Below, in pieces: positions 5,331 through 34,490 of a DNA stretch of 48,696 nt. The position numbers were made by a program, and so were the translations under genes. The stretch is from assembly GCA_026770705.1 (NCBI GenBank), contig JANJGN010000926.1:186001-234696 (forward strand), written 5' to 3'. Numbering within the stretch: the stretch's first letter is position 1; each line of letters opens with the position of its first letter. This DNA comes from Isurus oxyrinchus. Taxonomy: Eukaryota. The notes beneath the pieces are model-generated. The model worked only from the letters and a program-made list of their open reading frames with translations, had not been told where the DNA came from and ran no database searches.

Positions 5331-6758
5331 AAGAGTTACTGATGTGGGGCTTAATTTATCAGATTGTAGAATGATCCGGAAATGAAGGATGCCATTTGGC
5401 CCATCGAGCCTGTGCTGGGCCTTTGAAAGATCTGTCCAATTATTCCCACTCTCACCTCTGCTCTCTCCTCCACAGCCCTGCAAAATGTCCCCTTCAAGTA
5501 TTTATCTAGTTCCCCTTCTGAAAGTTCCTGTTGAATCTGCTTCCACCGCCCTTTCAGGCAGTGAGTCAATGGTCTCTCTCTGAGCTGCAAAGTGCTAATG
5601 TTCTGAGAACTTTAAACTCTGCAGCAGATCAGAAACAATCATGATAACTCAGAATATTTGACAGCTTTACACACAGACAGCTTTGCCTTCCTTCTCTCTT
5701 TCAGTTATCTTGCTCCCTTATTGAAGTATCTAGCAAGGTGAGAATGGACAGGAAGTGTGACACTGAACAGCCTGTCTATTCTAGGAGCTGCTGTGTTGTC
5801 TTCATGGGAAATTCTGACTAAAATCAGCAATAGACACAAAATTTCAGGGCATTGTTATCCGAGTCCCAGCATCAGGATAGACCTCATCCCCCAGTTGGTA
5901 TTCCTGATTCTCTATTCAGCTGATCACTCCCCTGTCACTGGCTGAACTACACTGACTCCCAGTCCAGCAATGACTCAAATTTCAAATTCTCATCATTGAT
6001 TTCTTACCCCACCATCCCCCCTCTACACTCTCTATCTGTGTAACCTCCTCCAACCCTAAATCCCTCTGAGATCTCTGCACTCCTCCAATTCTACTGTCAG
6101 ACAGGGAGTCAGTGTATATCAGTGAGCACAGGGGTGATGGGTGAATGGGACTTGGTGTGAGTTTGTACACTGGCTCACTGCTGAATCGGTTGCCAATCAC
6201 ACTCAATAAGAATGATCTTTTACAAAGACTATTAGCCATAAAACTGTCCGAGCTGACGACGTTATTACCTTGGAGAAGTGACAGGAGGAAGTAGGATTTC
6301 CCGATCATTGTCCACTCCCAGATACTTCATAAGCTTCTGACTCTCAAACTCTGAAAGAAAAAAGAGTTAATGAGACCTCACCTCTTGTCCGACAGCTCTC
6401 AAGAGATCAGAACTGTTTTTGGACAATGTCTTTACAGAGTAATTTGATTCTCTGTGGGATGATAGGTGCTCTGCAGAGAGTTACAAGGCTTTAAGAAATA
6501 AAAACATTGAAGGATTTGCATTTCTATAGCACCTTTCACCACCTCAAGACGTCCCAAAGCTCATGTCTCTGCACTTCCCTCATCCCTTGAGCTAGAAAGA
6601 TGTTCTGTACAACAGACTTGAGTCTCACACCCAGATCTCAATAACCAGTAGAAATCTTTCAAAGGCATCAATCATTGGAATCGGTCTTTATAAAGTCACA
6701 ACATCAACAAAGGACGGTGTTGGTCGTGGAAGTGAATTCCAGTCGTTCCGTTACTTAC

Positions 6759-6899
6759 CCAGGACCTGTCCGACTGCTCGCCTGGGGAGGAACTGCCCAC
6801 ACGCTCTGCTTGGGCTGAATGACCTCTTCCTGTGCTGCTCCCTCTGTGTGTTTAATTAGAAAGGGTGGATGTGTCACTGTGAGACAAAATGAGGAAGTG
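6759..6899 (-). promoter_or_regulatory. Non-coding first exon and promoter of copy A, with PU.1/ETS motif
   Basis: Donor GG|gtaagt at 6759. AAAATGAGGAAGTG at 6886-6899 is conserved at the same place in copies B and C. Confidence 0.6.
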
Positions 6900-7124: not shown

Positions 7125-8108
7125 GAGGGAGTGCTGCACTGTCAGCGGGACTCTACTGTGGGAGTGCTGCACTATCAGAGGGTCAGTAATGGGAGAGTGC
7201 TGCACTGTCAGAGGGTCAGTAATGAGGGAGTGCTGCACTGTCAGAGGGTCAGTAATGTGGGAGTGCTGCACTGTCAGAGGGTCAGTAATGAGGGAGTGCT
7301 GCACGGTCAGAGGTTCAGTACTGAGGGAGTGCTGCACTGTCAGAGGGTCAGTAATGTGGGAGTGCTGAACTGTCGGCGGGTCTGTATTGAGTGAGTTCCG
7401 CACAGTCAGAGGGTCAGTATTGAGGGGGTGCCGGACTGTGGGAGGGTTAGTACTGAGGTAGAGCCGAGTGTGAGAAGATATCCTTTCATGGCAAAGTTTA
7501 ACTGGAATTTATTTAAACAGAATTCTTGTACTGTGTGTTATTGCAAAAGAAAGGATTTGAGGAACTAAGTCTTGTTCCCGTAAGCCTAAAAATAATTTTC
7601 ACCGATTCAATGATTTAGCATTGAAACCTCCCTCTTTGGGCACCAGTCTTGATTGAATCAACTCGAACAGCACCATGGGAGGGTGAGTACTGAGGGAGTG
7701 CTGCACTGTGGGAGGGTGAGTACTGAGAGAGGGCTGCGCTGTGGGAGGGTGAGTACTGAGGGAGTGCTGCACTGTCAGAGAGTCTGTACTGAGGGAGTGC
7801 TGCACTGTCAGAAGGTGTGTACCGTGGGAGTGCTGAACTGTCGGAAGGTCAGTAGTGAGGGTGGGATACAGTGTCAGAGGATCAGTACTGAGGGAGTGCT
7901 GCACTGTGGGTGGATGAGTACTGAGGGATTGCTGCACTGTCAGATTGTCAGCCATGAGGGTGTGCTGCACTGTCAGAAGGTCAGTGCTGACAGGGTGCTG
8001 CACTTGAAAAGGGTCAATAATGAGGTAGTGCAGCACTGTCAGAGGGACAGTAATGAGGGAGCGCTGCACTGACCGAGGGTCAGGATTGAGGAAACGCTGC
8101 ACTGTCAG
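7125..8108. repeat. 33-bp minisatellite arrays (GAGGGAGTGCTGCACTGTCAGAGGGTCAGTACT), two blocks
   Basis: Tandem units visible at 7125-7460 and 7675-8108; they produce the periodic 11-aa pseudo-ORFs in the track. Confidence 0.92.
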
Positions 8109-8821: not shown

Positions 8822-9430
8822 AAGCTTTTCATAAATGGAGGGATTGAGTACAAACACAGGGAGGTTATGCTGAACATTTATAAAGCTCTGGTTAGGTCAC
8901 AGCTAGAGTATTGTGTCCAGTTCTGCTCTCCTCACTTTGGGAAGGAAGTGAGGGTCCTTGAGAGGGTGGGGAGGAGATTGAGCAGAATGGGTCCAGGGAT
9001 GAGGGATTTTAGCTACAAGGTTGGGTTGGAGAAGCTGGGGTTGTTCTCCTTGGAGCAAAGGAGATTGAGGGGGGATCTGATCGAGGTGTACAAGATGATT
9101 ATGGGTTTAGATACGGTAGACAAAGAGAAGCTGTTGCCATTAGCTGATGGGACAAGGACTGGGGGACACAGATTGAAGGTTGTGGGCAGTGGGGGGATGT
9201 GAGGAGGAACTTTTTTACACAGCGAGTGGTAATGAGCTGGAACTCGCTGCCTACGAGGATGGTGGAAGTGGAGACGATGAACGATTTCAAAAGGAAATTG
9301 GATGGACACTTGGAAATAAACATGCTGGGATACGGGGATAGAGCGGGGGAATGGGACTGAGTGGATTGCTCTACACAGAGACAGCATAGACTTAATGGGC
9401 TGAATGGTCTCCTACTGTGCTGGAATGCCT
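8822..9430 (+). mobile_element. CR1-type LINE 3' end (ORF2 C-terminus and 3' UTR)
   Basis: YKALVRSQLEYCVQF.SP...LERV.RR...LEKLGLFSLEQRRLRGDLIEVYK...TGGHRLK; tail gggctgaatggtctcct. Confidence 0.9.
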
Positions 9431-9543
9431 CTCTGATACGAAGGTGATTCTAACCAGGACACTGACCAGTTTCATTACAACTTAACACAACATCACACGT
9501 TATTTGTCCGCACTGACTGACCAGATTCTTGCTTTACAAAGCT

Positions 9544-9683
9544 TCAAACAGTCTGTCGACTTCCTTTCACTGTTTGTCTCTCCCAGACACAGACTCCAGT
9601 GATAGTGATAACCACAGCCACAAGGAATATCACAGCTCGTATTCCCAGGATCAGGATCACATGCAGAATCTCTCCTCCACTGT
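9544..9683 (-). other. Transmembrane/short-tail exon of copy B with intramembrane Arg
   Basis: tttctttctgtgtgttctctag|AC AGT GGA... encodes (H/D)SGGEILHVILILGIRAVIFLVAVVITITGVCVWERQTVKGSRQTV*. Confidence 0.8.
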
Positions 9684-10074
9684 CTAGAGAACACACAGAA
9701 AGAAATCATCACTGACTCTCCGCTTTCAATCTCTCACTCTGGCTGAACAATCAAGCTTCATATCACTGCAACATTTGCTGTAATATTGACCCATCCACTG
9801 GGATTCAATGTGGAATGAATGTTTTCATTGGAAACACTCTAAGAGTGGACAATCGGAACTTTCCCCTTAGCGTGGAACATTGTTGAGAATGGATCATTGT
9901 GCTGTTGGACTCCCTGTCCAATGTTTCTCTCCATCGCTGTGTACAGGATTGTGCTGTAGAAAATTCTGGAAACGTTTAGTGCAGGGTGGAAATCCATCTC
10001 GGACGCGTGTGCGAATCGGGCAGTATCGAGATGGACTCCCCCACGGACTTACACCCCCCGCTTAATAAACAGTT

Positions 10075-10450
10075 CCAATCTTTACCCAGAGAGAGGGGAG
10101 AATGTGGAACTCACTCCCACAGGGAGTGGTTGAGGTGAACAGTATCGATGTATTTAAGGGGCAGGAGGGTCGGTAACCAGAGGGACACAGATTGACCAAC
10201 TGGAGGGGGAGATGAGGAGAATTTGTTTTGACAGAGCGAGTTGTTGTGATCTGGAAGGTGCTGCCTGAAAGGGCGGTGGAAGCAGATTCAATAGGAACTT
10301 TCAAAAGGGAAATTGGATAAACACTTGAAGGAGGAAGATGGGGTAAAGTGGAGTGGTGGTTAGTGGATCTGATTGGATAGAACATTGAAAGACCTGGCAC
10401 AGGCACAATGGGCTGAATGGCCTCCTCCTGTGCTGTATCATTCTCCGCTT
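10075..10450 (+). mobile_element. CR1-type LINE 3' fragments
   Basis: gagttgttgtgatctggaa...gtggaagcagattcaataggaactttcaaaaggg...gggctgaatggcctcctcctgtgctgt, matching the LINE tail at 8822-9430. Confidence 0.75.
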
Positions 10451-13400
10451 CCATGATCTCTCCCCCAGTCAGTAACCATTCCAGATCCCTCTTGAAGGCG
10501 ACAGAGAAACAGGAACTACCACACCCACTGACAGCACATTCTCAAGGATCCCTACTCTTTGGGAAAAGATGAACTCCCCAACATCCAGCCTATTCCTGCT
10601 TCCCAGAGAGTGTAAACCCTTCAGGGAGGCGCTGAGGAAGTTTTCAATAAAATGAATTATCAAATCTATCATTTGAGAAATAATTTAATTCTGATGAACT
10701 CACAGCTTGTGTAGCAAACTGGGAAGTGGAGTTGCTTGAAAAGCTGGGAAACACAAGGATTAAGTGCTACAATGCCACCACTGGTGGGAGACTGTAACTA
10801 CAGTGTGACGTTTACATAGGCAGTCATCATTATAAACAGGGGCATTGGACATACTGGGAAATATGTGCACTGGAAAGGTGAGTAAATGATGTAAGATTTT
10901 CACCAGCAGGAATTCTCTAACTAAACCTCTCCACCTCTCTCTTACTCTCAGATACACAAACAAAATCACACCGAATCAGATAAGGAGGAGTTGGGGCCGG
11001 TGATTGTTCGAAGGGTTAGCTTTCAGGAAGCTTCTTAAAGGGAGAGAGAGAGTTGGAGAGGCAGAGAGTATCTGTGAGTGTCTCTATGCATCTGAGTGTC
11101 TGTAATAGACTTTTTAATTTCCATATTCTTCCATAAATATGATTGGGAACACAAATCCCAGAATCCAGGCCAACTCTCCAGTGCAGTACTCAGGTAAGCC
11201 ACAGGGGAGTGTGTGCTAGTGTGTTTGTTCGTGAGTGTGTCTTTGTAATTGCTCATACATGTGTGTCTGCACGTGTCTATTTAGTTCTGTATATTTGTGT
11301 GTGTTTGTGCAATGTTTGAATCTGAGAGAGATGTTGATGTCTGTGTACACTCACGTTCCACAGTGATGGTTATGAACCCCTCCACTGCTCCATGTTCATT
11401 CTCTGCCACACACTGATAGTCTCCAGTGTCCCGATATGTAATGGGAGGAATCACCAACCACAGCTCATTGTTGGAACTTGTTCTGTTCATTTGGACATTA
11501 AGATGTCAGGGCAGGAATCAAGAAGCCCGTTCGCAGGATTACCAACAGAAAGTGAACCACAATTTATACTTAATGGGAAGAGAGTGCTGATTGGTTGGCA
11601 AGTGGTCTCTGATAGGTGGACGTGTTGCCATGGAGAATGGTGTGTGCGAGATGTAAACTTTAGACAGCTTGTCTCTTTATTCAGCAATAATCAAATAAAG
11701 ATCAATTAACTTCAATCGACTGTGAAGCACTTTGAGAGGTCTGAGAATGTGGACACTGAGAACGGGCTGCACTGTCAGAGGGTCAGCGCTGAGGGAGTGC
11801 TGATGTAGAATGAAAGGTGTATGTACTTACCTTGCACAGTTAGTACGAGGGTCCGCTCCGATGAAACAGATGGATATCTCACTCTGCAGCTGAGTGTGTG
11901 TCCGTGGTGTTTGAGTGATGGGATCAGGGTCAGAACAGAAGTATAGGTCAGAGTGACACCATGCTGAGTTACAGTGTTTGAGACTGATCCAGGTACGTCA
12001 GTGGGAGTTTCCCAGGTTAAGACAGGCGCTGCTGTTCCATTGCACGTTGTGTTGATGGTGCAGCTTACATCCACATGCTTTCCTGCAATAATTTCAGCAG
12101 GGAATATCGTGGGTGTATCTGTGAAATCTAACAGACAGAGAATGGATCCTTTTAGAGAAATATAACGTGAAGCATCAGTTCAAATAGAAACCACAGTCCC
12201 ACAAGAGAAAGCACTTTTACAAGGATGATATCAGAACTGAGAGGTTACAATGATCAGGAGAGATTTTCTTGCTCTTTGGCAGTAGTGTTTCTGTCTCTCA
12301 GCTTAATACACGTTCACTCCGAGACATGTGAATTGAGAACACTGGATGAGAGAAGAGGCTCAGACCAGAGATTGGAGTTCAAAGCAGAATACTGCGGATG
12401 CTGGAAATCTGAAACAAAAACAAAAATTGCTGGAAAGACTCAGCAGGTCTGACAGTATCAGTGGAGAGGAAGCCAGGGTTAACGTTTCGAGTCCGTATGA
12501 CTCTTCATCAGACCAGAGGTTTGAGTTCACTGGCTTCTCATTTCCTCAGTGATCTGGGTGATTTATTACCTTGTGGTTTGTTGGATCTTGCTGTGCACAA
12601 ACTGACTGCTGTGTTTTACATCTGTGACTACAATTCAGGAATAATTTCAATGGCTGTGAAGGGATTTGGATCCTCCTGAGGTGGTAAATTGCGCTGCAGA
12701 AATGCACATCTTTCTTTTATCGATACGTCAGACTTTTAAACAGGACAGGAGAGATTGATGAGAGTGGATAACCTGATAATACAGTTAATGCTTTTCATCA
12801 TTGATATTAAAGTGAGTATTAGACGTTGCTTTAGGACTGAACTGGAAGCTATCACCAGGTTATTGAGAATCAGATAGCAAGTTATAATAAGCTGTGTTTT
12901 GTGTTAATATGTAAACGTCACAGATTGTGTTATCTCCCATTGAGTGTTGAATGTGAATTGTTGAGTAATCATAACACAGCACTTACCAGAAACGTGAAGC
13001 TGGGTTACAGGATAATAGTTGTATCTATTCCTGCTGTCAAATTCTATTCTGAAAAAATAAGGTCCTGCATCTTCCCGTCTGATGTTGTTTATAATCAGGG
13101 AACAGTCGCCATCTTTCAGGTCTCCAGACAGCCTGGTCCGATGGTGGAATCTTTGATCCCTGTGACTGTGACCCTCGGAATGAAAGGCTATAGACCATTT
13201 CGGCTGTGGGTTCCCATCTATTCCTTTCAACCAGATTCCGACACGTGATCTCCCTACGAAATTTGATAAGTAACTGTAATGACATGGAATCTGTACACAC
13301 GAACCTTCCTGCGCTGTCACCTCTCGTGAAGTGTCGCCTTTTCAATCTTGTGACAGTCCAACTGGGGAGAGAAATATCAATATTTAACTCTGGATGGTTT

Positions 13401-14554
13401 GTAGATCCACTAGACTTGATATCCACCCTCTCCATCACTGGGGCACAGTGGCTGCAGTGTGGACCATCTACAGGACACACAAGGAACTCCCCAAGGTTTC
13501 ACAATGGATGGAAGAGAATCCTGGACACAGGAGTGGACAAGTTCATTCTACATTGGCTCATGGTCCTCAGGACCCTGTTTAGTGAAGCCAGTCTTCCACC
13601 CAACACAGAGTCTACAAGATACACAGGGAAACTGTGTAAACATCTCATCTCTCTACACTGACTGGTTTGAGCTTCGGTTTAACTTTCAGTATTTTTAAAT
13701 TTCCATATTGTGGTTGCTATGGTGAAACTGTGCAGGAAGAGTGAGGGCTGGACCCTCTGTCTATTCTCACTGCAGCTGTGATGTGGTCGTGGTGATTCTC
13801 AGTAAAATGAAACCCTCTGAGCTCCTCCATCCCCGAGGTTTAGGGAGTGAATTCCAGAGCTCAGGCCCCAGGCAGCTGAAGGCCCGGCCGCCAGTATTGG
13901 AGTGATGGGAATCGGGGGATGGTCAAGAGGCCAGAATTGCAGTAACACAGAGATCTGGGAAGTTGTTTGGGTGAGTTGCAGGAGGTTACAGAGATAAAGA
14001 GATAAGAATGATCTTTTACAAAGAATATTAACCATAAATCTGTCCGAGCTGATGATGATATTACCTTGGAGAAGTGACAGGATGAAATAAGATTTCCCGA
14101 CCATCGTCCACTCCCAGATATTCCATCCACTTCTCACTCTCAAGCTGTGAAAGAGAAAGGAGTTAATGAGACCTCACCTCTTGTCCGACAGCTCTCGAGA
14201 GATCAGAACTGCTTTTAGACAATGTCTTCACAGATTAATTTGATTCTCTGTGGGATGATAGGTGCTCTGCAGAGAGTTACAAGTCTTTAAGTAAGACAAA
14301 CAATGATTGATTTGCATTTCTATAGCACCTTTCACTATCTCAGGACATCCCAAATCTCATGTCCCTGCACTTCCCTCATCCATTGAGCTAGAAAGATGTT
14401 CTGTACAACAGACTTGAGTCTCACACCCAGAATTCAATAATCAGTAAAAATCTTTCAAAGGCATCAATCATTGGAATCTGTCTTTATAAAGTCACAACAT
14501 CAACAAAGGACGGTGTTGGTGGTGGAAGTGAATTCCAATCGTTCCGTTACTTAC

Positions 14555-14695
14555 CCAGGACCTGTCCGACTGCTCGCCTGGGGAGGAACTGCCCACACGC
14601 TCTGCTTGGGCTGAATGACCTCTTCCTGTGCTGCTCCCTATTTGTGTTTAATTAAAATGGGTGGATGTGTCACTGTGAGTCAAAATGAGGAAGTG
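14555..14695 (-). promoter_or_regulatory. Non-coding first exon and promoter of copy B (AP-1 TGAGTCA adjacent to PU.1/ETS motif)
   Basis: Donor at 14555; TGAGTCA at 14676-14682 followed by AAAATGAGGAAGTG at 14682-14695. Confidence 0.6.
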
Positions 14696-14799
14696 CTTGG
14701 TACCAAGTGAGAAAGCAACTCTTTGCCTCGCACTGTTAGAAAACTGTTAACCCTTTGCGTGCCAATAATGTGGTTGAAGGGCCATCGACTGTTCATATG

Positions 14800-16075
14800 C
14801 AACAAGCTCGAGGGTTTGAATGGGCCTCCTCCTGTTCCTGTGTAACAGGCTCGAGGGGTCTAAATGGGCCTCCTCCTGTTCCAGTGTAACATGATTGTGT
14901 GGCTGATTAAGCCTCCCCCTGTTCCTGTGTAACAGTCTTTGGCAGGGCTGAATGTGCCTCCTCCTATTCCTGTGTAACAGGCTCCAGGTGCTGAATGCCC
15001 TCCCCCTGTCCTTGTGTAACAGGCTCGAGTGTCCGAATAGGCCTCCTCCTGTTCCTGTGTAACAGGCTCAAGAGGCTGAATGGATCTCCTTGTTTTCCTG
15101 TGTTACAGGTTAGATGGTCTGAATGGGCCGCCTCCTGTTCCTGTGTAACAGGTTCAAGGGGACAGAATGGGCCTCCTCCTGTTTCTGTGTAACAGCATCA
15201 TGGGGCTGAATGGGCCTCCACCTGTTCCTATCTAACAGGCTTGAGTGGCTGAATGGGCCTCCTCCTGTTCCTGTGTAACAGGCTTGATGGGGCTAAATGG
15301 AGCCCCTAATGTTCCTGTGTAACAAGCTTGTGGAGGCTGAATGGGTCTCCTGTACCTGTGTAACAGGCTCAAGGGGACAGAATGGGCCTCCTCCTGTTCC
15401 TGTGTAACAGGCTCGAGGGAACAGAATGAGCCTCCTCCTTTTCCTGTGTAACAGGCACGAGGGACTGAATGGGTTTCCTATTCCTGTGTAAGTGGGTTGA
15501 GAGACTGAATGTCCTCTTCCTGTTCCTGGGTAACAGGCTCGAGGAGCTGAGACTCTCTCCTGTTCCTGTGGAAGGGTGTTGAGGGACTAAATGTCCTTTT
15601 CCTGTTCCTGTATAATAGGCTCAAGAGGCTGATGGGTTTTCTCCTGTCCTCATGTAACAGGCTTGAGTGGCTGAATGGTCCTCCTCCTGTTCCTGTGTAA
15701 CAGGCTTGAGGGAATGAATGGGCCTCCTCCTGTTCCTGTGTAACAAGCTCGAGGGGGCTGAATGGGCCTCCTCCTGTTCCTGTGTAACAGGCTCGAGGGA
15801 ATGAATGGGCCTCCTCCTGTTCCTGTGTAACAGGTTCGAGGGGGCTGAATGGCCTCCTGCTGTTCCTGTGTAACAGGATCAAGAGGCTGAATGGGCCTCC
15901 TCCTGTTCCTGTGTAACAAGCTCGAGGGGGCTGAATGGGCCTCCTCCTGTTCCTGTGTAACAGGCTCGAGGGGCTGAATGTGCCTCTCCTGTTCCTGTGT
16001 AACAGGCTCGAGGGGGCTGAATGGCCTCCTGCTGTTCCTGTGTAACAGGATCAAGAGGCTGAATGTCCTCCTGTC
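14800..16075. repeat. ~42-44-bp minisatellite (GTTCCTGTGTAACAGGCTCGAGGGGCTGAATGGGCCTCCTCCT)
   Basis: Roughly 30 tandem units visible; the unit contains the LINE-tail motif gggctgaatggcctcctcct. Confidence 0.92.
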
Positions 16076-16079
16076 ATTA

Positions 16080-16295
16080 AAAATAAATACTGCAGATGCT
16101 GTAAATCTGAAATAAACACAGAAAATGCTGCATTAACTCAGCAGGTCTGGCAGCAGCTGTGAAGAGAGAAACAGAGTTTTTGCTTTGAGACTCTGAAGAA
16201 GGGTCATACGGACTCGAAATGCTAATTCTGTTTATCTCTGCACAGATGCTGCCAGACCAACTCAGTTTCTCCAGCATTTTCTGTTTTTGTATCAG
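16080..16295. mobile_element. Palindromic short interspersed element (Penelope/MER6-like); partial copies at 12382-12510 and 36735-36820
   Basis: Arm acagaaaatgctg...cagcaggtctggcagca...gagagaaacagag and its reverse complement flank ctgaagaagggtc. Confidence 0.6.
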
Positions 16296-17408
16296 GTGCC
16301 CTCTTGTTCCTGTGTAGCAGGTTCGAGGGGGCTGAATGGCCTCCTCCTGTTCCTATTCAATGGGCAGTCAAAGAATGTCTGATTTTGGACCTCGAACCCA
16401 ATTCTGTCCTCAGGACATTGACAGAAGGAGAGACCAGTTACAGGTTAATGCCGGAGGATTATTTATTTTCCCAATCTTTTATCCAAGTATCTCATCAAAC
16501 ACAGAGCAGAACCAGGATCAAGGATGTTGGTCTCTGTGATCTGTAACACATCGCACAGTCCACCCATCCACTCAGCCTTCAGGATGGATGCTCATTGTAC
16601 TCTCCAAGTGTGAAAGACTAAAATGATGGTTTATTGCAGCTATATCTCATTCTGTTGTCAAAGCTGTCTCATCCATCCATGACATATTGAAGAAGGTAAA
16701 CCTGCAACCAATTTTTCACATCATAATTTCCTATGTTCATTGGCAACATCAATGTAAACATGTCACGCTGAAATGATGTCCTGCCACCAGTGGTGGCACT
16801 GTATCACATCTGTTATCCTCTGAGCTGCAGAGAATTTCTCAAATCTCCAATCAAATTGTTTCCCTGTTTCCGGGATTGCTGATGGTTTTGCTCTTTAACG
16901 ATGAAGTGTAAAATCCAAATATATATCTGAAAATACATTTGACTACAAAATGCTGAGTAAATTTTACCAATCTCTTCTGCTCCAATTATCCACCGATCCT
17001 GCATTTCCTGAAGTCTACACTGGCTAATGAATATTCTGTAAAAACTGACAGACAGGAAGGTGAATAACAGAATGAAAATTAACTCATAATCACGGACACG
17101 GGATTGAATTTGTCCGTTCTGTCCTGGTACATCATCGAACGATATCTAAAGACATTTACAATCAGATTGGAGAGAAGGATGTTTCCAACAGTGAGGGACA
17201 AATCTGAAGGAGGATGTTCGAATTGAAACCCACAGACAATCATCCTGGATAGATCATTCCGAAGAAATTCCATCAGTTTGTAACAAGAGGTTTAAATCCA
17301 TTTCCTGGGAGTGAGTTCCTGTGGATATTAGGAAGGTAAATTGGAGTTTTGAATGATTCTCCCGTTCTGTATTCTCCCCACACTGTGTGTGTCTCATTCT
17401 TGCTCAGT

Positions 17409-17525
17409 TTATAAATTCCCATAAACAGAATCCTTGGCAAAATCACAGTTTGCGTAAAGATCATCATCTGTATCAGGATTGACTCCACGGTTAGATTTCA
17501 TTTCCAGATCCTTCTCATCTTTCTT
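17409..17525 (-). CDS. Orphan terminal cytoplasmic-tail exon with tyrosine motifs (ITIM)
   Basis: catttctgtttctattacag|AAG... encodes KKDEKDLEMKSNRGVNPDTDDDLYANCDFAKDSVYGNL*; minus-strand AATAAA at 16630-16635. Confidence 0.7.
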   Translation of the reverse strand, partial: KKDEKDLEMKSNRGVNPDTDDDLYANCDFAKDSVYGNL

Positions 17526-17662
17526 CTGTAATAGAAACAGAAATGATCAGAGTGACAATCAGAGTGATCAGTGTTTAGTATTATTGATCCAAATCGAAAA
17601 TTCCACCCACAATACATACATTAATTATTGATACTGTTGGATGCTGGTCACGAGTTTGTTGG

Positions 17663-20600
17663 GACTTATGGATCCAGTCTTGTTTTGGAGAGGCTGAGTA
17701 GGTACAATAGACAGAGTAGATCAGCAGACAGTTCTTAGATGAAACACATTCTGCTTATTTACAAAGGAACTCAGCAGCTACACTTGTGTGCTTTCAACTC
17801 AAGCCCTGTCTCCGCATTACAGGCTCTAACCATAGGTGACCGACTACTGAGGTACCTGCGCCACTCGGCTGTTGGACACTGATATAAGAGTTAAACAGGG
17901 ACTTCTATTAGTGAAAACCAAAGGTCAGCAGAATTCTCCAGGTGAACCTTGTGCACCATGGGGCTGACATCAGCAGAACTCTCCAGAAAGGCCTTGAAGA
18001 TCACAAGGGATTAACTCGAGAAGAGACATAAAGAGATGCTGAGGGTAAACAGATCAGGTAAAGGCAAACAGCACCAGGCTAGAACGAGATAAACAGCTCT
18101 TGCTTGGGTAAGGAGCAGATATATACCTGGGACTGGGAACATCTGCTTATTATGTGATTATGTACTGACAAGATTTGAATTTAAATAACCCAATGTGTAC
18201 GTGACTAACTCTGTGAACAAAAAAGATGGTTTCCCTGTAATGGGTAGAGTTCTGTTTTTAGCCAGGCCTGAGGTTGATTCTGAGAACACACCACAACACT
18301 GAGCTCATGTTATCTTCCATTGTAACCTTCTTCTTAAAGGTATATCACACATCAGATTACCACCACCCTCCCCCTTTACTCAGAAACACATTTTACACTT
18401 ACTTTTACCATTTTCTCAAAGTATCAGATGATTTACACAGATCAGTAATTTACAAATTCAGTCTTTCTGGGGGGTTTCCTTATGCGTCTGGAACGTCTCA
18501 GATCCACAGCTTCAGATGCTTTGTCAGGAGTCTCCTTTTCTGATGTTGTCCCAACACCAGCTTCTTCGGTGGACACCTGCAAACCTGTTTCCTCAACTCT
18601 TGCAGGTACAACGGACCCTTCAGACACATCTGTTCTCAGCTGAGTTCTTTCAACAGGAGACATAGACACAGCCGTGAAGACTGGTGGGGTTGTTTCTTGG
18701 TACTTTGTTTCTCTCCTCCTTATATGACCCACATGTCTCCATATGACTCGGTCTTCCACTTTCACATGGTGAGAAAGAGTTCCAATCGCTGCATTTATTT
18801 CACCCGGTGACCACTTTGGCCCTTCTCTAAAATCGTTCACATATACCGTCTCTCCTACGGTCAGCTTCCTGTCATGGCTATGCCAGTCATGTCCAGTTTC
18901 CTGTCTTCCTGGACTCCTTTCCACCTTCCCGCTGACATTTAGCATGACTGATGTTGCAAATGTGACGTGAGAAAAAACTTTTTCACACAACTAAGTTTTG
19001 GGCCTGGAATGCACGGCCTGGACGTGTTGTGGAGGCAGGTTCAATCGAGGCATTCAGGAGGGCATTAGATGGTTATTTGGATAGAGAAAAGGTGCAGGGG
19101 CATGGGGAAAGGCAGGGCAATGACACTAGGTCATGATGCTCATTTGGAGAGCTGGGATAGACATGATGGGCTGAATGGCCTCCTGCTGTGCCATTAAGAC
19201 ACTGTGATCCTGCAGAGGAGACTCTGAAAGGCAAACCGGTTTATTGATACAACCCTTTGTGTGTATTAATTGTGACAAACTTCTGGGAGGCCTTCTCGAA
19301 CTCCAATTGTTGATAAGCATGGCTCATATCAGCTCCGTGTAGGCCGTTCCAGTCAATTCTTGTCATCTCCACAAACACTTTGGCCAGGCTCAGGTCCAGG
19401 GACTATTGGTGCTGCCCATTCTGAGGACAGCACAGATTGTATCACTCCCAGTTTCTAGAACCTGCCCAATTCAGCATCTGCCTTTTCCCACATTGCATAA
19501 GGTACTGGTCGTGCCTTCATAAATCAGAGGGGTAGAGTCTGGATCCACATGAATTTTTGCTTGCAGCCCCTGGATCTCCCCGAGTTCATCTTGGAAAACT
19601 GAGATGTATTTTTGTAGTAGCTCAGGTAGCCCACTGGCTCTCAGTTGGAAGATCTCAGACCAATCCAGCTTAATATCTTTCAGCCAGTTTCGTCCAAGGA
19701 GGCTTGGTCCCTCACCAGCTCCCATCATCAAGGGTCATTTTACTGATTGACTTCCATACTGTATAATAACCCTGCTTATGTCTTTGGCTTGAATGTCTTC
19801 TCCCGTGTAAGTTTTCAATTAGTCATCTGTTTCTTCCAAATTTAATTGACTTTCCCCATGATTCCAGTATTTGAAAGTATGCTCCCCAATTAGCGTAGTG
19901 TTAGCTCCTGTGTCCACCCCCATTCTGAGAGCTCTATCATTCACCCTCACTGTTACATAGATTGGCTCTGTTCTTCCTACCTTTAAATTATACAATGAAT
20001 AACTATCTGAATCTGTTACTTCAGGCTCTTCTATGTTATGGATCTCACAGGGTTTTCTCTCTTGATTGAAACTCTGCCTGATTCTATCCTTGCAATCTCT
20101 CATGGGCTCTCTGTTTCGATGACAGTAAAAACAATTGATTTTTTTAAAGTTCCATTCACTACGAGGTTGTCTGCTTCACCTCTGTTCCCATTATTCCATG
20201 TTTTCTCTGCTAAGTCATTCCTTTTTATTTGCTGCTAGTGGTGGAGGTTTCCCGTTTCTCATCAGAGCTGTACATTTTCCCGCACTTCTTGGCTGAGGCT
20301 CCTCACCCAACATGAGGACGGTGACATTTTGCACTCTCCATATGTTTTTCGAGTCCCTCACTGCTCTTTCCATAGCCAGCACTATTCCCAGCGCCTTCTG
20401 AATATCCAAATCTGTTTCAGACAGTAATCTCTTCTGAATCACATCTTCATTTATACTGCACACCAGTCGATCTCTCAGCATATCATTTATAGATTTACCA
20501 AACCCACAATGTCCTGTTAACTGTTTCAGAATTTCCACATAACATGCAGCTGCCTCCCCTGGGACTCTATTTCTTGAGTTAAATTTGGACCGTTGCATCG

Positions 20601-21005
20601 TTACCGAGGGCTGGGGCTGGGAAGGAATCTTCACAAGGTTCACAAGATCATCTAAACTTTTTGAATCCATGGCACCGGGTGGCATTAAAGTTCGCATCAA
20701 TCCCTAAGTCTTACTCCCACACGTGGATAAGAGGGTCGCTCGCCTCTTCTCCTCCCCATCAATGTCATTCACTTGGAAAAAGAATGCGAGAGGTTCACCA
20801 TAATGAGACCAATCGCCCACCGTTGGGTCGAAAGGATCAACTCTTCCAAACTGCAGCATTCTTCGAGGGGACTGCTTCGGTTATTAGGATGGAAATTATA
20901 TTTATAATCACTGTGCGAGGCACGGCCAGATTTCAATTCGCTTGCTTTCATTCCTTGCTTTTTCTTCCTTGTTTTTCACCTCATCACCAGTTTATTCAAC
21001 CCTTG
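17663..21005 (-). mobile_element. Degenerate Ty3/Gypsy retrotransposon (gag, protease, RT start, integrase C-terminus, PPT, 3' LTR)
   Basis: Gag MLRDRLVCSINEDVIQKRLL; protease VDTGA; GPSLLGRNWL; integrase tail RRSRRIRKPP; PPT AGTAAAGGGGGAGGG at ~18366-18380; large internal deletion. Confidence 0.85.
17870..18298. mobile_element. Solo LTR nested in the Gypsy 3' LTR
   Basis: 429-bp block with inverted termini TGTTG...CAACA interrupting the LTR; no clean target-site duplication seen. Confidence 0.5.
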
Positions 21006-21039
21006 TCACTATTTTAGTTGACCAATGGGTTCGGTTTAC

Positions 21040-21680
21040 ATTCCCTCGGTACTGAGCCTGCGACAGTGCAGCATTCCCTCGGTACTGACCCTCCAGCAGT
21101 GCAGCACTCCCTCAGTACTGACCCTCCGAAAGTGCAGCTCTCCCTCAGTACTGACCCTCCGACCGTGCAGCACTCCCTCAGTACTGACCCTCCGATTGTG
21201 CAGCACTCCCTCAGTACTGACCCTCCGACTGTGCAGCACTCTCTCAGTACTGACCCTCCCACAGTGCAACACTCCCTCAGTACTGACCATTTGACAGTGC
21301 AGCTCTGTCTCAGTACTGACCCTCTGACAGTGCAGCACTCCCTCAGTACTGACCCTCTGACAGTGCAGCTCTACCTCTGTACTGACCCTCTCACAGTGCA
21401 ACAGTCCCTCAGTACTGACCCTCCAACAGTGCAGTACTCCCTCAGTACTGACCCTCTGACAGTGCAGCACTCCTTCAGTACTGACGCTCCGATTGTGCAG
21501 CACTCCCTCTGTACTGACCCTCTGACAGTGCAGTTCTCTCTTAGCACTGACCCTCTGACCTTGCAGCACTCCCTCAGTACTGACCCTCTGACTATGCAGC
21601 ACTCCCTCAATACTCACCCTCCAACAGTGCAGCTCTCTCTCAGTACTGACCCTCCGATTCTGCAGGACTCTCAGTCCTGA
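21040..21680. repeat. 33-bp minisatellite array (reverse orientation relative to 7125-8108)
   Basis: About 19 units of CAGTGCAGCACTCCCTCAGTACTGACCCTCTGA. Confidence 0.92.
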
Positions 21681-21908
21681 CACTGAGTGCTGATCTGGTT
21701 TGCCAGCCTGAATTTTGCCAAATGAATCTCGAACAGGTGACCATCCACTCAGAGAGTGAGAGAGGGTTCGAAACCCAGTGACCCACAGGAGAAATTCCTG
21801 GTCAATGACTTTCCACTTTTGAGCAGAAATATCATCACAAGTCCAGAACGCAAAGGGTTAACAGCTTCAAAAAACTCAAAACATCAGCTGCTCTGTCACT
21901 TTGATCTG

Positions 21909-22048
21909 ACTTCCTCATTTTGTCTCACAGAGACACATCAACCCTTTCTAATTAAATACACAGAGGGAGCAGCACAGGAAGAGGTCATTCAGCCCAAGCA
22001 GAGCGTGTGGGCAGTTCCACCCCAGGCGAGCAGTCGGACAGGTCCTGG
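21909..22048 (+). promoter_or_regulatory. Promoter (PU.1/ETS motif) and non-coding first exon of copy C
   Basis: ACTTCCTCATTTT at 21909-21921; donor GG|gtaag at 22048; inverted near-copy of 6759-6899. Confidence 0.6.
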
Positions 22049-22492
22049 GTAAGAAACGGAACGATTGGAATTCACTTCCACCACCAACACCGTCCTTTGT
22101 TGATGTTGTGACTTTATAAAGACAGATTCCAATGATTGATGCCTTTGAAAGATTTCTACTGATTATTGAGATCTGGGTGTGAGGCTCAAGTCTGTTGTAC
22201 AGAACATCTTTCTAGCTCAAGGGATGAGGGAAGTGCAGAGACATGAGCTTTGGGACATCCTGAGGTGGTGAAAGGTGCTAAAGAAATGCAAGTTCATCGT
22301 TGTTTTTCTTCCTTAAAGCCTTGTAACTCTCTACAGAGCACCTATCATCCCACAGAGAGTCAAATTAGGTCTGTGAAGACATTGTCTAAAAGCAGTTCTG
22401 ATCTCTCGAGAGCTGTCGGACAAGAGGTGAGGTCTCATTAACTCCTTTCTCTATCACAGTTTGAGAGCGAATGAAATACCTGAGAGTGGACG

Positions 22493-22532
22493 ATGATCGG
22501 GAAATCTTACTTCCTCCTGTCTCTTCTCCAAG
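22493..22532 (+). CDS. Siglec-like copy C, signal-peptide exon
   Basis: MIGKSYFLLSLLQ + G|gtaata; acceptor at 22459; phase 1. Confidence 0.8.
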
Positions 22533-23455
22533 GTAATATCATCGTCAACTTGGACAGATTTATGGTTAATAGTGTTTGTATAAGACCATTCTTATTGAGC
22601 TCTGATAGGAAACCGATTCAGCAGTGTGCCAGTGTACAAACTCACACCAAGTCCCATTCACCCATCACCCCTGTGCTCACTGATATACACTGACTCCCTG
22701 TCTGACAGCAGAATTGGAGGAGTGCAGAGATCACAGAGGGTTGTAGGTTTGGAGGGGGTTACAGAGACAGGGAGTGTAGCGGAGTAATGGAGGGATTGGA
22801 AATCAAGTGTAAAAATAATCACATCGAGGCATTGCTGGACTGGGAGCCAGTGTAGGTCATCGAGTCACTTGTGGGGTCGGGGTGGAGGTTTGGGGAGGTG
22901 AAAGTTTGAGTAGAAAATCGGACGCAAAATTCAGGGGATGAAGTCTAACTTGATGCTGAGGGTCTGACAGCAATGGCCTGAAATTAGTGTCTTTTGCTGA
23001 TTTTAGTCAGAATTTCCCATGAAGACAACACAGCAGCTCCTAGAATAGACAGGCTGTTCAGTGTCACACTTCCTGTCCATTCTCACCTTGCTAGATACTT
23101 CAATAAGGGAGCAAGATAACTGAAAGAGAGAAGGAAGGTAAAGCTGTCCGTGTGTAAAGGGGTCAATATTCAGTTTGTATATTTGTCTTTGCTCTTGACA
23201 CATGCAGAGCTCAGGCTAGAGGCGCTTTGTTAGTGTGTTTCACAGTGTCTGCTGGAGTAGGGTCAGTGCTGAGCTTGGGGACAAGTCAGTCTACAATGCT
23301 GCATCGGAATCAACAATACAACAATATGGGGTTTCGATCAGAAATAATCCATTAGACAATGAGGATCCAAAGAGATTCCTTAGACAATGAAGTGACAATG
23401 AAGATTCAGTTGACATTGAGGATCCAGAATTAAATATAGATATTTCTCTCCCCAG

Positions 23456-23824
23456 TTGGACTGTCACAAGAGTGGAAAGGTGACACTCCACAAGAGGTGA
23501 CAGCGCAGGAAGGTTCGTGTGTACAGATTCCGTGTCATTACAGTTATCCAGCACATTTGGAAAGCCAACCACGAGTCGGAATCTGGTTTAATAACGAGAA
23601 ACACAAATTCGACAATCCCTTTGCCTTTCACTCCAAGGATCACAGTCACGAGTTACCAAGGTTCCGCCATCGGACCCAGCTGTCTGGAGACCTGAAAGAT
23701 GGCGACTGTTCCCTGATTATAAACAACATCAGACGGGAAGATGCAGGACCTTATTTTTTCAGAATAGAATTTGGAAGTACAAATAACTACAACTATTACC
23801 CTGTAACCCGGCTTCACATTTCTG
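23456..23824 (+). CDS. Siglec-like copy C, V-set Ig exon (intact, essential Arg present)
   Basis: 369-nt phase-1 exon VGLSQEWKGDTPQEVTAQEGSCVQIPCHYSYP...GIW...RTQLSGDLKDGDCSLIINNIRREDAGPYFFRIEFGSTNNYNY; Cys pattern fits the Siglec B-E intra-sheet disulfide. Confidence 0.92.
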
Positions 23825-24750
23825 GTAAGTGCTGTGTTATAATTACTCAACAATTCACATCCAACACTCAATGGGAAATAACACAAACTGTGACGTTTAC
23901 ATATTAACACAAAACAAAGCTTATTGTAACACACTGTCTGATTCTCAATAACCTGCTGATAGCTTCCAGTTCAGTCCTAAAGCAACCTCTAATACTCACT
24001 TTAATATCAATGATTAAATAGATTGAGTGTGTCCATCAGTGTTATCAGGTTATCCAATCTTATCAAGCTCTCTAATCCTGTTTTAAATTCCCACAAATTG
24101 ACAACAGAATGACTTGCATTCCTATAGCGCCTTTCACCACATCAGGACGATCCTTAATCGATTCACAGCCAATGAAGTGATTCTTGAAGCACACATTCTC
24201 TCCACTCTCTGGGTAAAGAAGTTTCTCCTGAATTCCCCATTGGAGTTATTAGTGAGGATCTTATATTGTCAGCCTCTGGTTTTGTTCATTTGTTCCATGT
24301 CTACTCGATCAAAACCTTTCACTACTTGAAAGATCAAATGAGGTCACCCCTCAACCTTCTCTGTTCACGGGAACAGAGACCCAGCCTGTTCAGCCTCTCC
24401 TGATAGGTAAAGCCTCACATTGCTGAGATCATCCTTGTGAAGCTTTTTACCACCCTCTCCAGTGTCTCTATATCCTTTTCCAAATGCTGAGTCTGTTCTC
24501 CCCTAGCTGTGAGCTGTTCCTCCACCCTCACCCAGTCTGGTCAAATCAAGGGTCACTGAGTGAGAGTGTATTAATCTGAGTGACAGAGATTCAACAAGTG
24601 TAAAAAGAGACAATTCTAAAATGATCATTGTAACCTCTCAGTTCTGATATCATCCTTGTAAAAGTGCTTTCTCTTGTGGGACTGTGATTTCTATTTGAAC
24701 TGATGCTTCACGTTATATTTCTCTAAAAGGATCCATTCTCTGTCTGTTAG

Positions 24751-25047
24751 ATTTCACAGATAAACCCACGATATTCCCTGCTGAAATTATTGCAGGAAAG
24801 CGTGTGGATGTAAGCTGCACCTTCAACACAACGTGCAATGGAACAGCAGCACCTGTCTTAACCTGGGACACTCCCACTGACGTACCTGGATCAGTCTCAA
24901 ACACTGTAACTCAGCATGGTGTCACTCTGACCTATACTTCTGTTCTGACCCTGATCCCATCACTCAAACACCACGGACACACTCTCAGCTGCAGAGTGAG
25001 ATATCCATCTGTTTCATCGAAGCGGACCCTCGTACTGACTGTGCTAT
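24751..25047 (+). CDS. Siglec-like copy C, C2-set Ig exon
   Basis: 297-nt phase-1 exon DFTDKPTIFPAEIIAGKRVDVSCTFNTTCNGTAAPVLTW...TSVLTLIPSLKHHGHTLSCRVRY; extra Cys for the interdomain bond. Confidence 0.9.
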
Positions 25048-25214
25048 GTAAGTACAAACACCCTTCATTCTACATTAGCAGGAATAGTATCAAATGTGCA
25101 CAGCAAGCTCCCACATACTGCACTTTGTTTATAAACAAACCATTGGTGTTTAACTAGTAAAAAGTGAGCCCTGACAGGCAGTACATCCTTACTACTGACT
25201 CTCCGACAGTGCAT

Positions 25215-26950
25215 CATGGACTCATAGACTCATAGACACTTACAGGACAGAAGGAGGCCATTTAGCCCATCTTGTCCATTCTGGTCAGCAACTCCCTCCC
25301 TAAGTGCATCACCTCACATTTTTCCAGGTTGAAGTCCATTTGCGTCGTGATCATTCCCCCTATATTTACGTCCAATTCATTTATATACACCACAAACAGC
25401 AAGTGCCCCAGCACTGAGCCCTGTGGAACCCCACTGGAAACAGACATCCAGTCACAGAAACATCCCTCCACCATCACCCTCTGCTTCCTGCCTCAGCCAA
25501 TATTGGATCCAACGTGCCACTTTGCCTTGGATCCCATGGGCTCTTACTTTCTTGGCCTCTCTGCCAAGAGGCACCTGATCAAAAGCCTTCCTCAGCCCAT
25601 GTCGACCACATCAAAGGCATTACTCTCATCAACACTCCTGGTTACCTCCTCAAAAGATTTGATCAGGTTTGTCAAACATGACCTTCCCTTAACAAATCCA
25701 TGCTGAATATCCCAGATTAATCCTTGTCTCTCCCAGTGCAGATTCATTCTGTCCTTCAGAATTCTTACTAGTAACTTCCCCACCACCGAGGTTAGACTGA
25801 CTGGCCTGTAATTTCCTGATCTATCCCTTCCTCCCTTTTTTAATAATGGGACAACATCAGCCATCCTCCAGTCCTCTGGCACCTCACCTGTGGCCAGAGA
25901 GGATTTGAAAATTACTGCCAGGGCCCCTGATATCTCTTCCCTTTCCTCCCTCAACAGCTTTGGATTCATCTCATCTGGGCTTGTGGATTTATCCACTTTT
26001 CAGGCCACTAAACCCACTAGTACCTCCTCTCTCTGTGTTAATTTCCTCTCATATTTCACTGTCCTCCACCCTGATGTTATACCTGCATCATCCTTTTCCA
26101 TTGTGAAGACTGATGCAAAGTATTCATTGAGGACTGTACCCACGTCTTCCAGGTCCACACACACATTACCTCGATAGTCCCTAATCGGCCCCACTCTTTA
26201 CCGAGTTATTCTCCTGTTCTTTACATATTTAAAAAACCCCTCTGGGTTTTGCTTTATTCTACCCACCAGTGCTTTCTCATGCACTCGCTTATCTTTCCTA
26301 ATGTCCTTTTTCAGTTCCCCTCTGCACTATTTGTACACCTCTAGGGACTCTGCTGTATTGAGCCCTCAGTATCTGCCATAAGCTTCTCTTTTTTCTCAAT
26401 CCTAACCTTTACGTTCCTTTTCTTCCAGGGTTCTCCAGACTTGGTCTCCCTCTTTGTCTTTACAGGAAGATATCTGCTCTGTACTCTCGCTATTCCCTCC
26501 TTGAATGCCTCCCACTGCTCTGACACAGTTTTATCTGCAAAGAGCTTCTCCCAGTCCACTTGGGCCCAATCATATCTCATCTTAGTAAAATTAGCCTTTC
26601 CCCAGTTTAGAATTTTTATTCCCAGCACAAACTTATCCTTCTCCATAACTGTCCTAAATCCAATTGAGTTACAGTCACTATCTCCCCTACTGATACGCTT
26701 TCCACCTTTCCCTGCGCTTTTCCATATATTAGGTCCAGAACTGTCCCCTCCCTTGTTGAGCTTTCTATGCACAGACTAAAAATCTTCTCCTGGATGCAAC
26801 TTCAGAATTTTTCTCCCTCCCTACCTTGCTCACTAAAGCTGTCCCAATTAATATTTGGGTAGTTAAAATCCCTGAGTATTACTGCTTTATTATTCTTACA
26901 CATCTCTGAAATGTGATCACATGTTGGATTGTCCATCTCTCCCTGACTGT
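25215..26950 (-). mobile_element. CR1-type LINE ORF2, degenerate with internal deletions
   Basis: NYRPVSLTSVVGKLL...QHGFVKGRSCLTNL; VSSGVPQGSVLG.LLFVVYIN; LNEYFASVFT; tail aatggcctccttctgtcctgtaag with tctatgag repeats. Confidence 0.92.
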
Positions 26951-28869: not shown

Positions 28870-29430
28870 GACTTGCATTTCTCTAACGCCTTTCACCACA
28901 TCCCAAAGCATTTCACAGCCACTGAAGGAGGTTTTTGAAGTGCACTCACACTGTAGGAAATGTGGCAGCTGATTTGTGCACAGCAAGATCCCACAAATAG
29001 CAATGTGATCATGGCCTAGATCATCTGTTTTTGGTGATGTTGGGTGAGGGATAAATATTGGTCCCAGGACACCGGGGAGAACTCCCCCTGCTCTTCCTCC
29101 AAATAGTGGCTGTGGGATCTTTCACACCCGCCCGAGAGGGCAGACGGGGGACTCAGTTTAATGTCTCATTCAACATTGTTGCGCTCCCTCAGTACTAACC
29201 CTTTGACACTGCAGCACTCCCTTAGTATTAACCCTTCGATAGTGCTGCGCACCCTCAGTACTGTCCCTCCGTCAGTGCAGCTCTATTTCAGTACTAACTC
29301 TTCGACACAGCAGCACTCCCTCAGTACTGACCTCCGACAGTATAGCACTCCCTCAGTACTGTCCCTCCAATAGTGCAACACTTCCACACTACTGACCCTC
29401 TGAGAGTGCAGCACTCCCTCAGCACGGAGC
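28870..29430 (-). mobile_element. Deu-domain SINE (SacSINE1/AmnSINE1-like) with internal 33-bp tandem expansion
   Basis: Reverse complement of cccgtctgccctctc...aagatccca...gaagagcaggggagttctccccggtgtcctgg..aatatttatccctca; runs into 33-bp units at 29180-29425. Confidence 0.8.
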
Positions 29431-33989: not shown

Positions 33990-34490
33990 AAGGGGCTGAA
34001 TGGCCTCCACCTGTTCCTGTGTAACGGGCATCAGTGGCTGAATGGGCCTCGTCCTTTTTCTGTGTAACAGGCTCAATGGGGCTGAATGGGCCTCCTCCTG
34101 TTCTTGTCTAACAGGCTCGAGGGGGCTGAATGGGCCTCCTCCAGTTCCTGTGTAACAGGCTTGAGGAGCTAAATGGGCCTCCTTCCGTTCCTGTGTAACA
34201 GACATCAGTGGCTGAATGGGCTTGCTCCTGTTCCTGTGTAACAGTCTTGAGGGGGCTGAATGGCCTCTTCCTGTATCTGTGTAACAGGCTCAATGGGCTG
34301 AATGGCCCCCTTCTGTTCCTGTGTAACAGTCTCGAGGGGGCTGAATGGGCCTCTTCCTGTTCCTGTGTAACAGGCTCGACGGGCTGAATGGCCTCCTCCT
34401 GTTCCTGTGTAACAGGCTTGAGGGGGCTGAATGGCCTCCTCCTGTTCCTGTGTAACAGGCTCAAGGGGCTGAATGGCCTCCTTCTGCTCT
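33990..34490. repeat. ~43-bp LINE-tail-derived minisatellite, same family as 14800-16075
   Basis: About 12 units of gggctgaatggcctcctcctgttcctgtgtaacaggctc. Confidence 0.9.

Follow-up and report, generated by a model that had tools for sequence, protein, structure and literature searches.

The 48,696-nt window analysed here, from Isurus oxyrinchus (GenBank assembly GCA_026770705.1, contig JANJGN010000926.1, positions 186,001 to 234,696 of the forward strand; coordinates below are those of the window), carries interrupted or incomplete copies of Siglec-like receptor genes together with two terminal exons for alternative receptor ends, one encoding an arginine-containing transmembrane segment (Arg-TM; TM, transmembrane) and one an immunoreceptor tyrosine-based inhibitory motif (ITIM). 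We read it, with a probability of about 0.75, as the decaying edge of an elasmobranch Siglec-like cluster with alternative signalling ends, containing no working activating/inhibitory pair as assembled. The first-pass annotation of this DNA, made from the letters alone, had proposed a paired activating/inhibitory family. The pairing holds at the level of the family, where great white shark (Carcharodon) models with 91-92% identical V and C2 domains carry both ends, and fails as a working pair in the window, where the gene with the Arg-TM end has a nonsense codon and the ITIM exon has neither of the exons it would need, one for an uncharged TM segment and a second cytoplasmic one.

By sequence, the V and C2 exons belong to the Siglec (I-type lectin) family. 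Exons were mapped by tblastn with the window's own exons, then with 19 homologues and then with all ~270 fetched homologues, which yielded three V exons of one CD33-like type and two C2 exons; no family exons beyond those described here were found in the window with the ~270 homologues. In Pfam, the V exons matched V-set (3.4e-12 for copy 2, and 1.9e-11) and Ig_CD22 (1.9e-09 for copy 2, and 8.1e-11). A full HMMER scan with the V exon of copy 3 returned 1598 proteins at E<=1e-3, and the proteins closest to the V exon were NCBI models from sharks, rays and skates named CD33-like, Siglec-12, -13 or -14, or MAG-like. These matches by themselves place the window in an elasmobranch, in line with the cartilaginous fish proposed in the first-pass annotation. 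All of the 17 best solved-structure matches to the V exon were Siglecs, including Siglec-8 (2.4e-16), Siglec-5 (1.7e-15), MAG (4.7e-15), sialoadhesin (9.5e-15), Siglec-10, CD33 and Siglec-7, with far weaker hits to CD22 (5.9e-08) and Siglec-15 (1.2e-07). The best solved relative of the C2 exon was domain 2 of MAG (3.5e-07), and CD33 was matched at 9e-05. The sialic-acid arginine of the F strand is present in copies 2 and 3, where YFFRIE aligns with YFFRLE of Siglec-8, and absent from copy 1 and from the divergent V type of the Carcharodon model P0246. The Siglec cysteine pattern is found in the V exon (SCVQIPC and GDCSLII, a pair that aligns with that of Siglec-8) and in the C2 exon (VSCTxNTTC), and its cysteines would form the corresponding disulfides.

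The activating-type end is encoded by a terminal exon on the minus strand (9544-9683), comprising a stalk, a TM segment with one arginine (ILGIRAV), a tyrosine-free tail of 12 residues and a stop codon. From 9683 to 9544 it reads ctctag/AC AGT GGA and translates as SGGEILHVILILGIRAVIFLVAVVITITGVCVW ERQTVKGSRQTV followed by the stop; read in frame with a phase-1 donor, it gives (D)SGGEILHVILILGIRAVIFLVAVVITITGVCVWERQTVKGSRQTV and the stop, and its AG acceptor and phase 1 fit the donor of the C2 exon. Over 45 amino acids it shares 93% identity with the exact C-termini of the Carcharodon carcharias RefSeq 'Siglec-12' models P0164/P0167. Identity is 89% to P0189, a 'CD33-like' model of 270 aa from the same species with V, C2 and Arg-TM, and 78-82% to models from catshark and bamboo shark. 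One stingray model has a related terminal span (...AVRGVLFLLATVAVI...) and a tail of 11 residues. The ILGIRA segment and the short tail are conserved across lamniform, carcharhiniform and orectolobiform sharks, the arginine lying about one third into the membrane span from the outside with a histidine adjacent. Searches with the cassette, limited by their word index, detected no sequence kin of it outside elasmobranch models. A reading of the ...RQTV end as a PDZ ligand was dropped, its threonine being at position -1 and not -2.

The inhibitory-type end is a terminal cytoplasmic exon, also on the minus strand (17409-17525), which reads tattacag/AAG AAA from 17525 to 17409 and translates as KKDEKDLEMKSNRGVNPDTDDDLYANCDFAKDSVYGNL followed by a stop. 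Its C-terminal SVYGNL matches the ITIM consensus [S/I/V/L]xYxx[I/V/L], and both of its tyrosines, in DLYANC and SVYGNL, also stand in a YxN context. The 3' untranslated region extends to an AATAAA near 16630-16640, ~780 nt downstream. Over 38 amino acids the exon is 89.5% identical to the C-terminus of the Carcharodon 'MAG-like isoform X4' (P0246); identity is 82% to the basking shark (Cetorhinus) 'Siglec-13' isoforms P0158/P0159 and 55-66% to others. Neither terminal exon is a chance open reading frame (ORF), because they are 93% and 89.5% identical to exact C-termini of shark RefSeq models, and both lie where the first-pass annotation had placed them. The matches of the ITIM exon are tails of Siglec-like shark models, which answers the concern that it might map to an unrelated gene family. 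Region-restricted searches, limited by their word index, returned at least five proteins with the Arg-TM cassette and at least two with the tail of the ITIM exon, all of them Siglec-like. Copy 2 cannot use the ITIM exon, which is on its strand but upstream of it. Neither a hydrophobicity scan nor tblastn with 19 and then ~270 homologues revealed an uncharged TM exon or a further, second cytoplasmic exon in any part of the window, and the ITIM exon is thus stranded there without a TM partner.

Elasmobranch models with the V and C2 type of the window have three kinds of end: the Arg-TM end, a tail of the ...DLYANC...SVYGN[LVI] type and a tail with LxYAxL and TEYxxI. Among the ~270 fetched proteins, 8 have the Arg-TM end, 28 the YxN/ITIM tail and 14 (three of them from tetrapods) the classical LxYAxL plus TEYxxI tail. 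Because the Carcharodon models with the Arg-TM end and the ITIM-tailed P0151 are 91-92% identical over V and C2, we consider the paired design to be present at the family level. The basic TM residue and short motif-free tail expected of an activating receptor are found in the exon at 9544-9683, in a gene that carries a TGA; an ITIM-bearing partner with an uncharged TM segment and a near-identical ectodomain was found in Carcharodon, not in the window. These data show that a large and rapidly evolving Siglec-like family, with activating-type and ITIM-type ends, exists in sharks and rays.

Two origins can be considered for the stranded ITIM exon, and we slightly favour the first, given that order and strand fit, that both ends match at ~90% and that the inverted block invoked by the second has its own relic of a cytoplasmic exon. 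In the first, which is plausible though short of even odds, the ITIM exon would be the last exon of a divergent Siglec gene that begins at 37010 and is orthologous to P0246. The leader of this gene (36954-37010, minus strand) is 89% identical to residues 1-19 of P0246, and its V exon (35858-36151, minus strand) is 90% identical to the N-terminal V domain of P0246, a divergent type and not the CD33-like V; its nearest solved structures are sialoadhesin and MAG, and in its counterpart P0246 the position of the ligand arginine is a tyrosine (YYFYVD). P0246 is also the protein whose tail best matches the ITIM exon, and both its ends therefore match the window at ~90% on the minus strand and in the correct order of leader, V and tail. 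A retroelement gag ORF (35868-35185) cuts the V exon short after ...DSDVY, exactly where that ORF starts (35868), and the middle of the gene would have been lost through retroelement insertions and the insertion of an inverted unit. Against this origin, the C2, Ig3, TM and second cytoplasmic exons of P0246 type are all missing between 35.8 and 17.5 kb, and P0246 may be a chimeric gene model that fuses neighbouring genes.

In the second origin, which we find rather doubtful, the ITIM exon was the original 3' end of copy 3 and was split off by an inversion of the segment at ~21.85-25.1 kb. Copy 3 is indeed the inverted counterpart of copy 2 over 21848-25080, and the isoforms P0158/P0159 combine a V and a C2 domain similar to those of copy 3 (82% and 95% identical) with a tail of the ITIM-exon type. 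Were the inversion undone, however, the interval from the C2 exon to 17525 would still contain neither an uncharged TM exon, nor a first cytoplasmic exon of its own, nor a second one; the tail of P0246 is the closer match to the ITIM exon (90%), and the leader and V of P0246 match 37010-35858 in the right orientation; and the inverted block includes the upstream relic of a cytoplasmic exon, which a whole-unit inverted duplication explains better than a simple inversion. The divergent gene thus remains the slightly favoured source of the ITIM exon.

Copy 2 is the only chain in the window that runs from leader through V and C2 to the Arg-TM end. Its leader exon, which encodes the signal peptide, lies at 14065-14104 (minus strand; MVGKSYFILSLLQ; starting at 14144 when used as an internal exon) and is 85% identical to leaders of shark models; the V exon (12987-13361, minus strand) retains the Siglec arginine (YFFRIE); and the C2 exon (11831-12127, minus strand; Pfam C2-set_2, 3.3e-08; canonical AG/GT sites, phase 1) is up to 96% identical to Carcharodon models. 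With canonical splice sites and phase 1 throughout, local translation gives 283 codons with a single interruption, a TGA at codon 20 (13344-13342, in frame in the V exon) where the three-copy alignment has TGG in copies 1 and 3. Since there is only one nonsense codon, copy 2 as assembled is, on its sequence, a very recent pseudogene or null allele. It is possible, though unlikely, that copy 2 is instead a working activating receptor gene, the TGA being a consensus error, a segregating null allele or bypassed by splicing. The remainder of the chain is intact with canonical sites, a C2-to-Arg-TM joint occurs in RNA-like contigs at a likeness of at least 95%, and an AG 18 nt downstream (aaaag/GC GAC ACT), readable straight from the sequence, would keep phase 1 at the cost of six residues near the mature N-terminus. 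This AG has no pyrimidine tract, however; the assembly has TGA and no alternative base is reported; the leader-to-V joint is not among the joints listed for the contigs; and the V exon of copy 1 has also been hit by a nonsense codon, which points to decay being common in the cluster.

Logan contigs from four runs were aligned to 9400-15399, two guessed to be RNA (X6 and X17, from organisms A and B) and two DNA (X1 and X5). A joint between 9683 and 11831, which skips 2147 nt and has ends of CT..AC on the plus and GT..AG on the minus strand, falls exactly on the predicted C2 donor and Arg-TM acceptor and passes over a half exon of Ig3 type; it occurs in both X6 and X17 and in neither X1 nor X5. 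On these RNA-like contigs, at least the C2-to-Arg-TM form is transcribed. The first-pass annotation had named transcripts with either end as the support to look for, and the absence of any splicing of Ig exons to the Arg-TM exon as fatal to its idea; such splicing was found, in the form of the C2-to-Arg-TM joint. A second joint, between 14144 and 14555 (X6), connects a small cytoplasmic exon to an acceptor located 40 nt before the leader ATG, as in RefSeq read-through models. One loose contig end, at 14555, carries KRGE..., with which the second cytoplasmic exon starts, and another contig extends beyond 11507 into ESFPASNLTW, from the first half of the Ig3 exon; because these exon parts are absent from the window, both contigs must come from paralogues.

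In the mechanism we propose, ectodomain exons of V-set receptors of sialic-acid type would be joined to alternative signalling ends. The Arg-TM end would anchor the protein in the membrane, with an arginine buried there and without a signalling tail, and by analogy with other Ig receptors such a protein would reach the surface and signal only through an adaptor with a membrane aspartate and an immunoreceptor tyrosine-based activation motif, either FcR-gamma-like or DAP12-like, between which neither the sequence nor the position of the arginine decides. On the other side, an uncharged TM segment would be followed by cytoplasmic exons and then by the terminal exon at 17409-17525, whose DLYANC and SVYGNL, once phosphorylated, might recruit SH2 phosphatases and/or Grb2, again as in Ig receptors; the hypervariable segment of the V domain may, on the same analogy, tune the recognition of glycans or pathogens. 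In other Ig families, a conserved TM arginine with a short tail marks receptors that are coupled to an adaptor. That the Arg-TM forms are instead tail-less decoys or regulators competing for ligand, with the arginine serving retention or another partner, seems improbable: the position of the arginine, one third into the span beside a histidine, does not itself tell the partner, and anchor-less read-through models also exist, but ILGIRA and the short tail have been kept in three shark orders, with a related form in a stingray.

Several points weigh against reading the window as the decaying edge of a paired-end cluster. The RefSeq proteins used for comparison are gene models, and P0162, P0163 and P0252 are clear read-through chimeras. 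The repeat-rich cluster is perhaps misassembled between 17 and 37 kb. The TGA at 13342-13344 is an assembly base, for which the contigs gave no alternative letter and base coverage is not shown. That X6 and X17 are RNA is a guess, the shorter side of each joint measures only 28 nt, and a likeness of 95% would allow a close paralogue as the source. Finally, adaptor pairing, phosphatase recruitment and sialic-acid binding are presumed by analogy, being taken from other receptor families.

Among the closest known systems are shark RefSeq models, namely XP_041037180.1 (P0014, 'myeloid cell surface antigen CD33-like'), P0189 and P0164/P0167. They have the exon set and order of the window (leader, V and C2, then either Arg-TM or TM plus cytoplasmic exons), and the C2, TM and tail exons are 89-98% identical, which suits a fairly close relative of Carcharodon carcharias; the models are intact predicted ORFs in other species, whereas the window copies are interrupted or incomplete. 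Automatic annotation already names the family in ~20 elasmobranch genomes, and annotated Siglec-like genes also occur in bonytongue fishes (Arapaima, Scleropages), a mormyrid, turtles and a frog. A literature search found no paper describing Siglec pairs in sharks.

The mammalian CD33-related pairs (Siglec-5/14, Siglec-11/16) share with the shark family a V-set domain with the YFFR[IM]E arginine followed by a C2-set domain, and members with a basic TM segment and almost no tail beside members with tyrosine motifs and very similar ectodomains. Human activating Siglecs are often null or pseudogenic, and the TGA of copy 2 is the basis for the same likeness in the shark. Among the differences, the Arg-TM cassette showed no sequence kinship beyond elasmobranch models in the searches; the window V exons differ by ~26% in amino acids, far more than in Siglec-5/14; and the tail exon of the window, DLYANC...SVYGNL with its YxN tyrosines, does not have the CD33-related combination of LxYAxL and TEYxx[IV], which other shark paralogues do have. 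This classical tail is found in 11 models of other sharks, and it aligns collinearly but weakly with CD33-type tails of turtle and tree shrew (E 0.012-0.28 in a ~270-sequence database). MAG (Siglec-4) and sialoadhesin are also close: the C2 exon is near domain 2 of MAG, the divergent V is near both, and NCBI names some of the models 'MAG-like'. The main V type nevertheless scores slightly better with CD33-related Siglecs than with MAG, and compared with the five domains of MAG the shark architecture has 2-4 Ig domains and tails of immune type. CD72- and CD22-type tyrosine motifs bind both SHP-1 and Grb2, and the shark tails, whose extreme C-terminus has a Y-x-N core within ITIM-like surroundings ([SA][VI]Y[GA]N[LVI]), resemble them in this motif, beyond which there is no sequence homology.

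A teleost-based study concluded that fish genomes lack inhibitory CD33-related Siglecs (PMC7226832). We raise, as a tentative reading only, that elasmobranchs have a true Siglec system of CD33-related type, older than the divergence of cartilaginous from bony vertebrates, in which hypervariable V exons were shuffled and duplicated onto three interchangeable ends. Paired Siglecs would then be no invention of mammals, and their absence from teleosts would be a loss. Whether the pairing of inhibitory and activating glycan receptors is an old vertebrate strategy or a reinvention becomes a directly testable question. The window itself adds a broken example and the dynamics of a cluster, not a new type of system, and the locus is no functional pair. 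What it does display is turnover: a cytoplasmic exon dragged in front of the next leader by duplication of units, an inversion, hits by retroelements and single nonsense mutations in genes that are intact in other respects. Two nonsense codons in V exons, a half Ig exon, three copies of a small cytoplasmic exon and the truncated fourth V exon at 36151-35858 had been overlooked in the first-pass annotation.

The ectodomains had been described there as near-identical, which is right for the C2 exons (92% in amino acids) and roughly right for the V frameworks (86-94% nucleotide identity), but not for the V exons overall, which are 70-74% identical in amino acids across the three copies and include a central stretch of ~125 nt with 61-71% identity and indels. 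In self-alignments, the unit at 14760-11798 is 83-91% identical in nucleotides to 21848-25080 in inverted orientation, and 6914-6206 and 1228-555 are 86-92% identical to copy 2 in direct orientation. The cluster probably arose through partial duplications, both tandem and inverted, of a unit composed of a cytoplasmic-exon relic, leader, V and C2.

This relic is a small cytoplasmic exon (cyto1) found in all three units ~450 bp upstream of the leader with its donor GT conserved. The copies lie at 6759-6843 (minus strand, upstream of the leader of copy 1), 14555-14639 (minus strand, copy 2; 28 residues, GSSTGRGHSAQAERVGSSSPGEQSDRSW; acceptor AT instead of AG) and 21964-22048 (plus strand, upstream of the leader of copy 3). 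The copy 2 exon is 81-96% identical to the exon that directly follows the membrane segment in inhibitory models, where an exon of this type comes before the ITIM exon, either immediately or with a further cytoplasmic exon in between. A matching out-of-frame read-through of cyto1 into the next gene is seen in P0162 and P0163 (Cetorhinus) and P0252 (Carcharodon), and cyto1 may be a duplication scar that now serves as a 5' non-coding exon. The half exon skipped by the first joint (11356-11505, minus strand) is the 3' half of a membrane-proximal Ig exon of Ig3 type that has lost its 5' part; its identity to the corresponding second half of the Ig3 domains of P0246 and P0252 is 90-92%.

Copy 1 has a leader exon (6269-6308, minus strand) and a V exon (612-989, minus strand) with an in-frame TGA at 865-867, derived from GGA, and loss of the ligand arginine (LFTIKF); by its sequence this V exon is dead, and the gene continues past the start of the window. 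Copy 3, on the plus strand, consists of a leader exon (22493-22532; MIGKSYFLLSLLQ), a V exon (23456-23824) with an intact ORF and YFFRIE, and a C2 exon (24751-25047), and its leader-V-C2 ORF is intact. Homology to copy 2 stops ~33 nt past the C2 donor and is followed by a fragment of a long interspersed nuclear element (LINE); the exon inventory of the window has no TM exon downstream on the plus strand. Copy 3 is thus an inverted leader-V-C2 fragment, for which a secreted V-C2 product is at most conceivable. Read through the donor, its C2 exon (24751-25157, plus strand) stays open for 36 codons and is 86% identical over 133 amino acids to P0157, the Cetorhinus 'Siglec-12 isoform X6', whose C-terminus the read-through resembles. 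A second frame of the copy 2 V exon (13037-13480, minus strand) forms an ORF of 147 codons, entered from an upstream ATG (14127) within the leader exon. Its reading frame has stayed open by conservation, and its peptide also appears in the tails of the Cetorhinus models P0162/P0163, yet it is probably an annotation artefact.

The cluster is interrupted at 18442-20700, 34461-35868 and 25262-26772, all on the minus strand, by two degenerate fragments of long-terminal-repeat type (gag and protease, one with an integrase-like end) and one LINE reverse transcriptase (RVT_1, 1e-07). Two runs of N occur, at 41398-41645 and 45446-45673. A regular-expression search for a hepcidin-like cysteine motif at 26-32 kb found none. 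Two TM-like ORFs on the plus strand, at 1366-1422 and 40808-40864 (the latter isolated and reading LLFVGACCALIGCCVSYITTVTTLRKKGE), were set aside as TM exons of the family, having no match in family proteins. A 43-bp minisatellite occupies 14789-16072 (30 copies, between the ITIM exon and copy 2) and 33991-34486 (12 copies), the latter array adjoining the retroelement at 34.5 kb. Low-complexity arrays at 37279-39668 and 46816-48696 fill the distal part of the window, with CT/CA-rich repeats of 70-72/144 bp and a 12-bp repeat (CCTCATCCCCCT, 64% GC). A 33-bp minisatellite flanks the receptor units in four arrays of both orientations (7125-8108, 21042-21657, 29184-29422 and 42148-42570) and gives rise to long spurious ORFs with LSTDPLTVQHS repeats.

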